A stretch of DNA of 32,000 nt from Wallemia ichthyophaga EXF-994 (Eukaryota > Fungi > Basidiomycota), in assembly GCF_000400465.1 (NCBI RefSeq), contig NW_008806285.1:30001-62000 (forward strand), given 5' to 3'. Position 1 is the stretch's first letter, and each line of letters opens with the position of its first letter. Positions 13,306-18,957 of this stretch are shown here, one piece after another. The notes beneath the pieces were generated by a model that saw only the letters and a program-made list of their open reading frames with translations, was not told the origin of the DNA and did no database searches. The translations under genes and the position numbers were made by a program.

Positions 13306-16300
13306 ATGGAAATAGCAGTTGGGATTGCGGTACATGACTTTGAGCCTTCAGAACGAGATCCATCGATACTTAGCTTCAGTAAGAATGATATCGTGCACAT
13401 ACTCAATAAGGATGCTTCCGGTTGGTGGGATTGCCAAGTCAACGGTATTAGAGGCTGGCTGCCTATGAATTACGTGACAGAGGATATCGTACGTGCTTAT
13501 ATCCCCTCTCCACTTTATACTCACATTGATACCACAGGACGCTTTCTACGGCAACAGCGAAGATGATCTCGAGACTCGTGATGCTGACAAGAAGGATCAT
13601 CTCAAAATCTCAGACGATAATCTCAACGACGACTTTCCCCACGACGATCTTAATCCGCAGTCACAGCCCAAGGATTCTCCAATTGCAGCCGTGCGGAATG
13701 CTTTGACTTTGGTGAAATCTGCTGTTATATCTAGTCACCTGTCACACCTTCAGCCAGCTACAGCTTGTGTTATATCCTCGGTTAGATCCCTTCTCGCATC
13801 CGCAGACGCTTTGAACAAGGACTCGCATAGCAACAAGATTAGCGCGTCTATCGCAGAAAACAGACGAAATCTACTGTCTCTGCTATCCAGGTTCGTCGTT
13901 CAAAGCAGATTGGTTATGAAAGAAGCTTTGCAAACCTCCAATAAGGTTTTGCTAAGCGAGGATCTCGAGGAGGTTATTCCGATGGCCGATCAAGTTTTCG
14001 TCTTGGCTGAGAATTTCGCAAATCTCTGCAAGTCGCATGGTATTAGTCTAGGCGAAGATTTCACCCCTTATTCTTCTCCGCATACATCTCAATTGCCTCA
14101 TCATGAAACCAAGTGTCAAACTGAAAACGACATCCAAATTTCAGCTATACAAAGACAATCATCTGGAATATCCAGAATGACTTCCTTTGACTCTTTCAAG
14201 AGCTCCGCAGCTCAATCCGGCGCCTCTTCAGCCGTATCTCTCGTTTTCAATACCCGTGATGCGGGTGATTATTTGACCGAGGATAATATCAAACATGAAT
14301 CCTCCGCGGATCAAACTTTTGACAAACTTCTTTACGTTATCAATGAGGCTCTCAAGTCAACTATCGCAGCAACCCTCGGACATTTACACGCCATGCCCAG
14401 TCAAAATCATGCGTCATCTAGTATCCATTTGATCGACCTACTCAAGGAGACGATAGCAATAGTAAAGCGTCTTCTGACGGTTTTACAATCAATTCAACAG
14501 AATGGTCCGCTGAATACCATCGTTCCTAGGGACGGTTCTATGTTGGATGAAACAATTAGAGACACATACCTTTCCACTGATGATTTGGTAGCAGCAGCGG
14601 AGTCTTTACTATTTAATCAACCTCAAACGACATTGATAGATAGTACGCACGAGTCAAAGAGACACCACTTACTCTCGTGTATAATGCAAATTTACAAGAT
14701 AACAACGGAAGCGTATGAGATATCTTCGAGAATGATTGAGTACGCATCAAGGGCATCTATACCATTAAAATTGAACGTAAACATGCCAAACCGCACATCT
14801 AAGACTAGTCTACAAGACATAACAAATAATGATTTCAACAAGACGTTATCACAGCAAGACACGCTGCCACAAACAGTTACAGAAGCTAGTCAAAAAGAGC
14901 TTAAGAGACGGCACAGAAGACAACAGACGTTGTCAATGTTTGATAGAAGGACTGCCAGTCTTACGAATCTCCAAGATCAATTCCAATATGACAACAGTGG
15001 CAAGGAAGAGGGTAAAGAAATATTAACGACACCCACACTCCAAGATACCTTCGATCATGATAATGAAAATGACCGACCAGAGAGCAGTGCATCACATGAT
15101 ACGACTATCTGCGCACCATATATCACTTTCACAAGTACAGAAAATATTGGCACACCAACACAGGTTGAGAACATGAAGAATATATCTCCAACTTCAGGCA
15201 CATTCACAGAACAAAGCTCATCACCACAGTGGAATAATTGGGGAAATTCAAATGTGCTGAATTTGCCCACAGGCAGTCCAGAAGCGAGCAAATCATCCAC
15301 AACGCCCGAATCGCCTGTCGGTATTGCATTACCGTTGAGCACTCCGGACGTTGCAAAGGGACATGCCGTTGGTGGCAAGATGCCTAGTTTATCAAACGCA
15401 CCTGGTAGTTTTGATTTATCCGCTCTCAGACCTAGACCGCGAGCTAGAGCTGCGACTGTTGGGACAGCCGATATTAGTCAAAATCGCTATGATGAGAAGG
15501 AAAATTCTGCAGATTCGCCAGCATTGAAGTTGTCGTTCAGTGGTACGAATCCAAGTATTAGTAATACACAAAGAGATGATCTATCGGCAGCTTCGTTGAC
15601 ATCAGGATCTGAAGCCAACGGATCTATCGCGTCGACGAGAAGCAACACGGACGATGGTTTTGGTAAGGCTGGCACGTCTACACCCGCTACTGTTCACAGC
15701 TGGGTTTTGGATGAAAAAGGCTCGATTCGCGACAAGCCCAAGTTTGATATCGGTATTGAGACGGACAGTGACGGTGAAGATGTTGATAACTTGCCTCCAT
15801 TGCCGCTAAAGCAATACAGCGGGCGTCAACGCCAGAGAGCACTCACGACATCAGCGGCTCAGCCTTCCTCGCATCGTGGTTTGCAATCGACCGTCAACTT
15901 TGGGAAATATGATATAGTCAGAGGCGGTATGAATAACAAAATCATGGGCGCAACATTACCATCACTCGTGGCAACACTCACACCACACGATGTGACGCTC
16001 GACATCAATATTTTAGAAACATTCATGATGACATTTAGGCTATTTACGACACCGATCCAATTCGCAATTGAGCTTAAAAGTCGATTCGAAAATGCCGATG
16101 ATATTGAAAATAACAGTATCAGCAATACGATCAGACTGGGAGTGTATAATCTAGCCAAATTGTGGCTTGAAGTACATTGGGTCGATCGAGAAGACTACAA
16201 TGCACTTGAGACTATAGAGGATTTGGGTGTGAATTCCAACACTATGAACACATATACCGCATCGACTGATGTCTTATTGAATCTCATTGATAGACGTCGC

Positions 16301-17566
16301 TTCGAGCATGAGCATCCAGAGTCGATGAATCACAACAACAGCTCGTACAATTCAATAAGCAATAAGACAAAGTCTAAAAGACATGATGGACAGCATTCGC
16401 TCAAGATGTTTAAGAATCTGCAATTTTCAGAGACTAGCTCGGTTATGATGAACAGATATAGCAGGAGTTCAATAGGTAGTTCGATGGATCAGATACCAGT
16501 ACCACAAATCGGCAAGACACTTTTAAATCACTTAAAGTCGCCTCAAGGGTTGACGTCAGCTCCACTACCTACGGACTTCGAGCCAATTGAAATGGCGAGG
16601 CAGTTGACAATAATGGAGAGCAGGTTGTATCAGTGCGTTACTGTCTCAGAATTACTTAGTGTCAATGAAGGCGGAAGCAATAAAAAAGGCGTAGATGCGA
16701 ATGACGTCAGACCGGCTCTAAAGGCTATGAGTGAATTCACCACCCGCGTTACAGCTTGGGTGAGCGAATCCATCCTTAGAGAGGGCGAAGCTAGAAAAAG
16801 AGTACCTCCGATCAAGTTTTGGATCAAGGTGTGCAAGGTGGGTAGGATAAAATTTGTCGAGCTGTCTGACACGATTACCAGCATTCACTTTCGCTGAACA
16901 ACTACGGACTACTTATTGCGATTGTTTGTGGCTTGACGACATCGACAATCAGTAGACTCAAGCGGACTTGGGAGGTGTGTGAGAGTGTTACAGAAATAGC
17001 ACATGCTAATATCATCATTTAGCTCGTACCCGTAAAACATCGCAATCTGCTAAACAACCTCAACACAATGGCTGCATGTGATAGGAACTATGCAGTATAC
17101 AGAGCCAAATTACGTTCAGCTCAATTACCCGCATTACCATATGTCGGGCTGTTCCTGTCAGATCTTACATTTGTGCACGTTGGTAACAAACCAACGAGAC
17201 CATCATCGATAGATGGCAGAAGACAGGTGATCAATTTTGACAAGTATGAGAAGCTCAAGAACATTATTCAAGGTGTGTTGAATAATATACCAAGTATCAG
17301 TATTAACCAGATTATTAGATTTTATGAGATTTCAAGAGCCTTTCAGGTTGACAGAAGTGCCCGAGTTCCAAACATACCTGCATAGAGCATTGACACATGT
17401 GGAAGCCAGCAACGAATCAGCACAAGATTTGTATAATAGAAGCTGTGTGCTTGAACCAAAGAACTCGAGCGTGTCAATGCAGAAAGTGAAGAGCAATACA
17501 TCGATAGATTCTCTGAGACATTCAGTAGATCGCAGGGAGTTATTTGGATGGACAAAAAGACATTAA
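13306..17566 (+). CDS. SH3-domain Ras guanine-nucleotide exchange factor (Cdc25/Ste6/Sql2-like); introns 13489..13537, 16838..16881, 16975..17022, 17273..17318
   Basis: N-terminal SH3 (AVHDFEP..LSFSKNDIVHILNKDASGWWD..RGWLPMNYV), REM/RasGEF_N (GATLPSLVATLT..FMMTFRLFTTP), and a CDC25 catalytic domain (EMARQLTIME, SRLKRTWE, PALPYVGLFLSDLTFVHVGN, INFDKY, SCVLEP). The specific paralogue cannot be determined by eye. Confidence 0.9.
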
Positions 17567-17921
17567 AAAAGACATACAGTAACGACACAATTTAGAAAGG
17601 AGACATTGGAATACGATATAAATATTCCTGTACAATGACAATGCAAATGTATAATTAAATATTGAATGAAATGATTAAGAATGTGATTGATAATAAAGCT
17701 GATAAATTGTTAATAAGCATTTAAAAGTTTGTAGAATATTCGCCATCGCCATGTTTCGCCTGATCATTTTAGGAATAACAAATTGCCACAACTGAACCCA
17801 TAATTGAGGCGGTTGCTTTGGTTATCCAAGAGCCGCCACGATTTTTAGAAATTTATTTAGAGCGTCTAGAGTAGCTTTATCCTCAATACCAACATTCAAT
17901 TTTACAGCCACAACGAATATT

Positions 17922-18957
17922 ATGTCAGAGAGAGTACACAACAGAGTAGTGAGTTGTGTAGATGATAGTCACAGCAAATAGCTCATACATGCCATAGGTT
18001 ATCATTGGATCAGGTCCAGCTGGTCACACAGCAGCAGTTTACCTCGCTAGAGCAGAAATGTCACCTGTCATGTTCGAAGGAATGCTTGCGAACGGTGTGG
18101 CTCCAGGTGGTCAACTCACAACGACAACCGATGTCGAGAACTATCCAGGTTTCCCAGACGGTATTAGAGGTCCTGAGATGATGGACAAGTTTAGAGCCCA
18201 GTCTGAGAGATTCGGTACTCAGATCCACACTGAGACCATCTCCAAAGTTGATTTATCCAACAGACCTTTCAAATATTGGAGAGAGGGTTATGAGGAAGAT
18301 GGAGAAGCGTTTGAGTTGGCTGACTCTCTCATTTTAGCCACAGGTGCATCTGCCAAGCGTTTGTTCATACCTGGTGAAGAAACATATTGGCAGTCAGGTA
18401 TTTCTGCATGTGCAGTTTGCGATGGTGCAGCACCAATTTTCAGAAACAAATCTTTGGCAGTCATTGGTGGTGGTGACTCCGCAGCAGAAGAAGCTACATA
18501 CCTCACCAAATACGCTTCACATGTTCACGTCTTAGTACGCAAGTCTGAATTAAGAGCTTCAAAGATCATGGCTGCAAGATTACTCAAGCATCCTAAGGTT
18601 ACGGTTCACTGGAACACAGTCGCAACTGAAGCACTTGGTGATGGCGATTTATTGCAAGGTCTCGGCCTCAAAAACACTCAATCTGGTGAAACTAGCAAGT
18701 TGGACGTGAATGGTCTGTTCTACGCTATCGGTCACGAACCTGCCACCGAACTTGTTAGATCTCAAGTAGATACTGATAACGACGGATATGTTAAGACTGT
18801 GCCAGGTACCACCCAAACTAACATCAAGGGTATCTTCGCTGCCGGTGACGTTCAAGATAAAAAATACAGACAGGCTGTCACATCAGCTGGTTCAGGTTGT
18901 ATGGCAGCTTTGGAGTGTGAAAGACTTCTTGCAGAGGAAGAAGTTGAGGAATCATAA
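17922..18957 (+). CDS. TRR1: Low-molecular-weight NADPH thioredoxin reductase; join(17922..17948,17998..18957)
   Basis: [14 protein letters not shown] (FAD site, completed by splicing out 17949..17997), [17 protein letters not shown], the ACAVCDG redox Cxx[12 protein letters not shown], and FAAGDVQD. Confidence 0.97.

Follow-up and report, generated by a model that had tools for sequence, protein, structure and literature searches.

TRR1 and its upstream open frame

We analysed the thioredoxin reductase gene TRR1 of Wallemia ichthyophaga EXF-994 and the sequence that directly precedes its annotated start codon. The gene lies within a 32,000 nt stretch of contig NW_008806285.1 (positions 30,001 to 62,000, forward strand), in the following called the window, and all coordinates refer to this stretch unless stated otherwise. 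The spliced coding sequence translates into P0001, a protein of 328 amino acids, with 100% identity between the window translation and the annotated protein. Its product is a low-molecular-weight NADPH thioredoxin reductase of the TrxB/Trr1 type. It matches the Pfam families Pyr_redox_2 (1e-47), Pyr_redox_3 and Pyr_redox, carries an N-terminal FAD motif of the GxGxxG/A type as well as a CAVC redox centre at residue 147, and is 71–80% identical to other basidiomycete thioredoxin reductases (TRRs).

An earlier note on this DNA had drawn attention to a possible N-terminal extension of this enzyme, read from an ACG codon and resembling a mitochondrial presequence. The details that it gave can be read directly off the sequence. 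The ACG at 17838–17840 directly follows GCCGCC (17832–17837) and lies 28 codons ahead of the ATG at 17922 in the same frame, which is open from 17808 onwards (38 codons) without any in-frame ATG. The stretch from ACG to AUG encodes T/M-IFRNLFRASRVALSSIPTFNFTATTNI, with three arginines and no aspartate or glutamate, to which we add a count of seven serines and threonines. This extension is absent from the annotation, in which the TRR1 protein begins at AUG 17922.

The extension is conserved as coding sequence

Orthologous loci were collected through the cluster members of the TRR protein. They comprise a second W. ichthyophaga strain with an identical leader (L015), a sister lineage (L011, run SRR25399871), four W. 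mellicola assemblies (L001–L004) with a close relative of W. mellicola (L012–L014), and a more distant, AT-rich Wallemia-like lineage represented by metagenome contigs (L005–L010). In all lineages, the TRR frame is open over 38–46 codons before the AUG (38 in the window, 39–46 in the others) and contains no in-frame AUG. Stops or frameshifts in the corresponding segment of relatives, which the earlier note had named as evidence against the extension, are present in none of the four Wallemia lineages.

The leaders encode the same peptide throughout (TIFRNLFRASRVALSSIPTFNF, TIFRNLFNASRVALSSIPAFNF, TIFRNIFKASRVALSSIPTFNF and VFFRRLFKPTSTALSASSYIPTFNF), with the consensus IFRNLF.AS.VALSSIPTFNF, and the indels in the alignment comprise whole codons only. 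The block IPTFNF is preserved by way of synonymous changes, and arginine is retained across changes among the codons AGA, CGA, CGC and CGT. For a codon test, we used Nei-Gojobori counts over ungapped blocks and a Fisher test for synonymous excess. In the TRR frame, the ratio of the nonsynonymous to the synonymous proportion of differences (pN/pS) was 0.11–0.14 among the three closer lineages (pS 0.53–0.69, pN 0.06–0.09; p = 1.4e-5 to 1.9e-4) and 0.39–0.45 against the distant lineage (p = 0.006–0.02). The other two frames of the same alignment gave ratios of about 1, no synonymous excess, and stops. Between W. ichthyophaga and W. mellicola, most differences fall on third positions (2, 1 and 10 by codon position).

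As a control, we inspected the leader of the septin gene, which contains in-frame stops in all lineages and could be aligned only with many gaps. The raw nucleotide identity of the extension (0.73–0.79) is only moderately above that of the septin leader and the intron (0.56–0.69); the case rests on the codon-position pattern and not on identity. No signal of RNA structure was detected in the extension region (minimum free energy −8.5 kcal/mol, z = +0.23), and we rejected both RNA structure as the source of the conservation and a hairpin promoting initiation; an Rfam search of the region returned no credible match, with a chance hit of 19 bits against a threshold of 167 bits. Since the signature of purifying selection is frame-specific across four Wallemia lineages, it is very probable that positions 17838–17921 are translated in the TRR frame. 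We regard this cross-species coding signature as decisive for the view that the extension is not a product of chance.

Properties of the encoded peptide

The resemblance of the extension to a mitochondrial presequence, proposed from its composition, is supported by its computed charge, composition and amphipathicity and by a sequence motif. In all lineages, the peptide is free of acidic residues, has a net charge of +2 to +4 (+3 in the window) and contains 4–7 serines and threonines. The hydrophobic moment over 11 residues, a home-made calculation and not the output of a trained predictor, ranges from 0.68 to 0.82 across lineages and reaches 0.82 in the window. As a null set, we took the 3219 stop-free 28-codon windows from all six frames of the window; 0.82 corresponds to the 99th percentile of this set, and only 0.5% of its members combine the absence of acidic residues with a net charge of at least +3 and an equal or higher hydrophobic moment. 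With these measures, the extension scores within the range of the AUG-initiated presequences on other fungal TRRs, while the cytosolic N-terminus scores low.

A φ-x-x-φ-φ motif, the type of motif that is bound by Tom20, occurs in all lineages as FRNLF, FRNIF or FRRLF. Two other kinds of targeting signal were considered and dropped by eye: a signal peptide, as a hydrophobic core is lacking, and a type 2 peroxisomal targeting signal (PTS2), as no R-[LVI]-x5-[HQ]-[LA] pattern was seen.

Features of the upstream region and neighbouring genes

The features of the locus are compiled in Table 1. Two stops separate the upstream open reading frame (uORF) at 17751–17795 from the extension, and this uORF is relevant only if the transcriptional start site (TSS) lies upstream of 17751. 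Bases 17753–17773 match the L005 leader ACGTTTCGCCTATTCATTTTGG at about 18 of 21 positions (by eye), at another offset and in another frame. The two conserved blocks TTTAGGAATAACAAATTGCCACAACTG and GCAAATGTATAAT may represent core-promoter, TATA-like or leader elements.

Table 1 Features of the TRR1 locus and of related leaders. Positions refer to the window unless another locus is named.
Feature	Position	Strand	Remarks
Conserved non-coding block GCAAATGTATAAT	17643-17655		Common to L011 and W. mellicola; upstream of ACG
In-frame AUG uORF, 14 codons, MFRLIILGITNCHN*	17751-17795	+	GCC-AUG context; not in other Wallemia lineages
Conserved non-coding block TTTAGGAATAACAAATTGCCACAACTG	17768-17794	+	44-70 nt upstream of ACG; common to L011, partly W. 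mellicola
In-frame TGA closing the open frame upstream	17805-17807	+	Read from sequence
Initiation context AAGAGCCGCC	17828-17837	+	100% identical in L011; W. mellicola keeps AGCCGGC
ACG, candidate start of long isoform	17838-17840	+	First near-cognate codon of the open frame
AUU (ATT), adjacent near-cognate codon	17841-17843	+	A at -3; ATT in 3/4 lineages; alternative or additional start
Basic amphipathic segment IFRNLFRASRVALSS with FRNLF	17841-17885	+	Conserved presequence-like core
IPTFNF	17886-17903	+	Most conserved block of the extension; invariant in 4/5 sequences, IPAFNF in L011
Variable linker TATTNI	17904-17921	+	6, 7 or 9 residues by lineage, whole-codon differences only
TRR1 exon 1 with annotated AUG	17922-17948 (ATG 17922-17924)	+	MSERVHNRV; A at -3; presumed start of cytosolic isoform
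TRR1 intron 1	17949-17997	+	GTGAGT...CATAG; removal gives P0001 at 100% identity
TRR1 exon 2 including stop codon	17998-18957	+	Pyr_redox_2 domain, GSGPAGH FAD motif, CAVC redox centre
L011 extension and main Met			TIFRNLFNASRVALSSIPAFNFNSATANL-M
W. mellicola extension and main Met			TIFRNIFKASRVALSSIPTFNFAANVNA-M
L005 extension and main Met			VFFRRLFKPTSTALSASSYIPTFNFNKPSSNINI-M
Tremellomycete open leader	L017 1288-1500		C. neoformans CNAG_05847
Tremellomycete open leaders	L023/L024 988-1200		
Tremellomycete open leader	L020 904-1200		
Tremellomycete open leader	L019 973-1200		
Tremellomycete open leader	L022 787-1200		
Tremellomycete open leader	L021 844-1200		

Upstream of TRR1, a RasGEF gene extends with its last exon to 17566, which leaves an intergenic gap of only 355 nt; downstream follows an AGC kinase gene on the minus strand. 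The gene order RasGEF (13493–17566), TRR1, AGC kinase (19306 to ~21000, minus strand) and septin (from 21427, plus strand) is kept in W. ichthyophaga, L011 and W. mellicola. The remainder of the window is occupied by housekeeping genes, among them those for the SEN1 helicase, DNA polymerase delta and the TOR kinase. In the distant lineage L005–L010, the upstream neighbour is an ABC transporter gene in place of RasGEF. Its TRR, encoded at 2717–3873 in L005, shows ~90% amino acid identity in a much more AT-rich sequence, and its first ~40 codons are interrupted by three introns versus one in W. ichthyophaga.

Candidate start codons for a long isoform

The 5′ edge of the coding signature coincides with the ACG column. 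Upstream of AGA-GCC-GCC, the six preceding codons are all non-synonymously changed between W. ichthyophaga and L011 (GGCFGYP versus GEILACR), and the 16 nt before AAGAGCCGCC are scrambled between the two. The segment AAGAGCCGCCACGATTTTT is identical in both, and because it is better conserved than the synonymous sites within the extension, selection appears to act on the initiation context.

At the ACG column itself, W. ichthyophaga and L011 have ACG, the W. mellicola clade has ACT and the L005 lineage has GTG; the next column reads ATT, ATT, ATT and TTT in the same order. Every lineage thus carries a near-cognate codon at one of these two columns (ACG and ATT, ACG and ATT, ATT, or GTG), and the GTG of L005 is the first near-cognate codon of its open frame, with an A at −3. 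Since ACT is not near-cognate, either the adjacent ATT or an upstream CTG would have to serve in the W. mellicola clade; in W. mellicola, such a CTG lies in frame 11 codons upstream, and L011 has ATA and CTG codons upstream. An alignment with related species, as suggested in the earlier note, therefore yields a divided result: the open frame is conserved, but a near-cognate codon at one and the same column is not found in every lineage.

Leaky scanning requires a stretch that is free of AUG, and such a stretch is present in every lineage: between the candidate start and the main AUG (84–102 nt), none of the five sequences contains an AUG in any frame. Taken alone, this is not significant (P(0) = 0.24–0.40 per lineage). 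A depletion of AUG within the extension and ahead of it was also considered as a sign of a long leader and discarded, as AUG is absent there, yet not significantly so.

Because neither of the two adjacent columns is universally near-cognate, the best statement is that initiation in the window likely takes place at ACG and/or AUU. For W. ichthyophaga, we consider the ACG the best start candidate, being the first near-cognate codon and having a context that is shared with L011, and there is a somewhat better than even chance that it contributes as a start itself. A less probable alternative, which we can entertain only tentatively, is that the long isoform starts solely from AUU 17841 or some other near-cognate codon, with the ACG merely a threonine-like codon of the context. 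It would fit the retention of ATT in three of four lineages, the A at −3 of this codon and the change from ACG to ACT in the W. mellicola clade. Against it, initiation in fungi is generally more efficient at ACG than at AUU, the ACG and its 10 nt context are identical in L011, and in the distant lineage the ATT column reads TTT with a GTG in the neighbouring column; moreover, adjacent ACG and AUU codons are treated jointly in the leucyl-tRNA synthetase (LeuRS) of Cryptococcus.

A dual-isoform model and its alternatives

We consider it quite probable that one TRR1 mRNA gives rise to two proteins, a minor mitochondrial and a major cytosolic thioredoxin reductase. In this model, a minority of the scanning ribosomes would initiate with Met-tRNAi at ACG 17838, within the context AAGAGCCGCC, and/or at AUU 17841. 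These ribosomes would produce an extension of 27–28 residues, (M)IFRNLFRASRVALSSIPTFNFTATTNI, fused to thioredoxin reductase, and this extension would act as a positively charged, amphipathic presequence that steers the minor isoform to mitochondria. Most ribosomes would leak past the weak start and initiate at AUG 17922, yielding the annotated cytosolic enzyme. The geometry of the locus and the presequence-like physico-chemistry of the peptide can be read from the sequences, and translation of the extension follows from the selection signature; the exact start codon, the inclusion of position 17838 in the transcript, mitochondrial import, the sub-compartment reached and the ratio of the isoforms belong to the proposed model.

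Several observations weigh against this model. The ACG is not kept in the W. mellicola clade and no column is near-cognate throughout, which makes the start ambiguous; in-frame CUG codons are also present upstream in W. mellicola and L011, and AUU initiates only weakly. With a TSS further upstream, the AUG of the uORF at 17751 would capture ribosomes. Transcript-derived Wallemia proteins or spliced contigs showing a transcribed leader were not found in the clusters of the protein collection. By inspection, the Wallemia peptides contain no clean cleavage motif (R-2, R-3 or R-10) for the mitochondrial processing peptidase (MPP), the best candidate being SRVAL↓SS. Finally, the conservation of IPTFNF is tighter than is typical of a presequence and may point to a further or another role.

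The last two observations would also fit the idea that near-cognate initiation does yield the extension, but that its role is not that of a matrix presequence and lies instead in the intermembrane space, in tethering to the outer membrane, in another organelle or in regulation. There is a precedent in yeast Gpx3, which gets to the intermembrane space via a short non-AUG extension of 18 residues (PMC5368413). We nevertheless judge such a role improbable, as the peptide agrees with matrix presequences in charge, composition, amphipathicity and Tom20-type motif and matches the AUG-initiated TRR presequences of other fungi; by eye, the peptide also lacks the core of a signal peptide and a PTS2-like pattern.

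Less probable still is that the conserved peptide is spliced on from an unrecognised upstream exon with its own AUG, so that no non-AUG start would be needed. Every lineage does have an AG in the 8 nt that precede the conserved peptide (TCGTTAG↓CC in W. mellicola), but by our own estimate chance alone would place one there in roughly 40% of cases. The 355 nt intergenic space offers neither a conserved upstream AUG nor a conserved GT donor, and the introns of Wallemia at this locus are ~50 nt long. The nearest upstream AUGs, at −163 to −263 nt from the main AUG, belong to short open reading frames with stops whose positions are not conserved; the sole plausible donor in W. mellicola (GTAAGG) joins out of frame, and no CTAAC resembling a branch point was seen.

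We give equally little credence to an untranslated leader conserved by chance or through a nucleotide-level element such as a promoter or RNA structure: neighbouring non-coding blocks such as 17768–17794 are conserved too, but the synonymous-biased third-position substitutions are limited to the TRR frame, indels are confined to whole codons, neither RNA structure (z = +0.23) nor a credible Rfam match was detected, and the septin control leader shows in-frame stops in all lineages and a gappy alignment.

Open TRR1 leaders in Tremellomycetes

We extended the comparison to the TRR1 genes of seven Tremellomycetes, namely C. neoformans, C. deneoformans, C. gattii, Cryptococcus sp. DSM 104548, Kwoniella europaea, K. 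newhampshirensis and Tremella mesenterica. In each of them, the frame of the annotated AUG is open over the preceding 71–138 codons, none of which is an AUG. The encoded leaders are basic and rich in serine and threonine, with a presequence-like composition, and most carry the pattern R/K-G-[IL]-[STA]-[AT]-[IV]-P, which fits an MPP R-3 site (R-G-I↓S/T-A). Codons AUC, AUA and AUU occur in a conserved N-terminal block, STISTI / ISFSIRT, and in the transcript-derived relative P0014 the homologous block begins with an AUG (MRTAVLRRS...).

Among the three pathogenic Cryptococcus species, the 213 nt of the open leader align without an indel, while the sequence further upstream does not. Their pN/pS ratios range from 0.27 to 0.53 and reach significance in the pair C. 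neoformans and C. gattii only (p = 0.001). The C. neoformans gene CNAG_05847 is not listed in the supplements of Wallace et al.

For C. tetragattii, there is an alternative long TRR1 model of 429 amino acids (P0151, XP_066613763.1) that starts from an upstream AUG (compared with L017 1100–1500), passes through two other frames of the leader via predicted introns and then joins REPKRTGEVSKK. This model looks like an artefact, yet it indicates that annotators saw a long transcribed leader.

The Tremellomycete leaders probably represent the same hidden, non-AUG-initiated mitochondrial TRR isoform, on thinner evidence than in Wallemia. Whether such an isoform is old and widespread in the Basidiomycota appears evenly balanced from the sequences compared; if it is, start codons would have switched repeatedly between AUG and near-cognate codons on one essential redox gene.

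Relation to known systems

The proposed arrangement has known counterparts. ALA1 (ACG) and GRS1 (UUG) of Saccharomyces cerevisiae are experimentally proven genes for dual-targeted tRNA synthetases. As proposed for Wallemia TRR1, a single gene yields a mitochondrial form from an upstream in-frame near-cognate codon and, through leaky scanning, a cytosolic form from an AUG; the difference is that these genes encode aminoacyl-tRNA synthetases, have experimental proof and carry unrelated presequences.

Closer to Wallemia, in the same phylum, mitochondrial isoforms of LeuRS and of the arginyl-tRNA synthetase (ArgRS) originate from near-cognate starts in Cryptococcus neoformans and C. deneoformans (Wallace et al. 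2020, PMC7049704). Cryptococcus LeuRS has adjacent ACG and AUU codons in a GCC-rich context (gccaccACGAUU, compared with gccgccACGAUU in Wallemia TRR1), placed before a predicted presequence and followed by a strong AUG for the cytosolic form. It is a different enzyme, with support from ribosome profiling and TSS mapping, whereas the case of Wallemia TRR1 is comparative only. Weak AUGs and near-cognate codons have repeatedly replaced each other in fungi (PMC7049704).

Within the same enzyme family, S. cerevisiae Trr1 has been listed as one of the candidate proteins that acquire a mitochondrial targeting signal through a non-AUG extension (Monteuuis et al. 2019, PMC6582344). Enzyme family and proposed mechanism are shared with Wallemia TRR1. 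S. cerevisiae also has a dedicated mitochondrial paralogue, Trr2. In Wallemia, clear purifying selection acts on the extension across a fungal class. Another thiol-redox enzyme with a short, cryptic non-AUG N-terminal mitochondrial signal is yeast Gpx3/Hyr1, whose extension of 18 residues confers mitochondrial targeting (Kritsiligkou et al. 2017, PMC5368413); it differs in its destination, the intermembrane space, in its protein family and in being linked to stress.

Many TRRs of other basidiomycetes and of Mucoromycota have an AUG-started presequence followed by an internal methionine at the position of the Wallemia AUG, as in Zychaea (P0101, MLFLARAVRPTTLFRPSPYPSARSTFSTSRFI-MAPKHHKVVVIGSG). 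Further AUG-initiated long TRRs were found in Microbotryum (P0056 and P0059), Moesziomyces (P0041), Phenoliferia (P0084) and Meira (P0072) and in P0007. As proposed for Wallemia, a single low-molecular-weight TRR gene encodes a presequence ahead of the internal methionine of the short form. In Arabidopsis, NTRA and NTRB are both expressed in cytosol and mitochondria (PMC7539121). Unlike the Wallemia gene, these fungal genes as well as NTRA and NTRB use an upstream AUG, in a dual-AUG arrangement or through alternative TSSs, and not a near-cognate codon.

According to a survey that includes both Wallemia genomes (PMC10512322), most Basidiomycota have one thioredoxin reductase gene. Some Mycena have two TRR copies, as P0046 and P0047 of Mycena latifolia are encoded on one 927,967-bp contig.

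Because ALA1 and GRS1, Cryptococcus LeuRS and ArgRS, and the candidate yeast Trr1 precede it, we regard Wallemia TRR1 as a case of a known mechanism. The mechanism is not new; the long form is a new, unannotated and unusually well-conserved instance of it, and our literature search found no work linking Wallemia TRR to non-AUG initiation.

Implications for the mitochondrial thioredoxin system

In Wallemia, and apparently in many other basidiomycetes, a cytosolic TRR is the only one that standard annotation provides, which leaves the mitochondrial thioredoxin system without a reductase. In our interpretation, the conserved non-AUG extension would close this gap from the same gene. Wallemia TRR1 would add an evolution-supported case to the short list of non-AUG dual-targeted enzymes beyond the tRNA synthetases, with a turnover of start codons (ACG, ACT with AUU, GTG, and AUG elsewhere) on one conserved presequence.

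If such isoforms are indeed widespread, the annotated proteomes of many basidiomycetes would be lacking their mitochondrial thioredoxin reductase. Among these would be C. neoformans, a critical-priority pathogen of the World Health Organization whose TRR1 is essential and a proposed drug target. The findings give a concrete reason to look again at the TRR1 leaders in Cryptococcus, for which ribosome-profiling data exist. For W. ichthyophaga itself, an extreme halophile under oxidative stress, the proposed isoform would correct the inventory of its mitochondrial redox defence.

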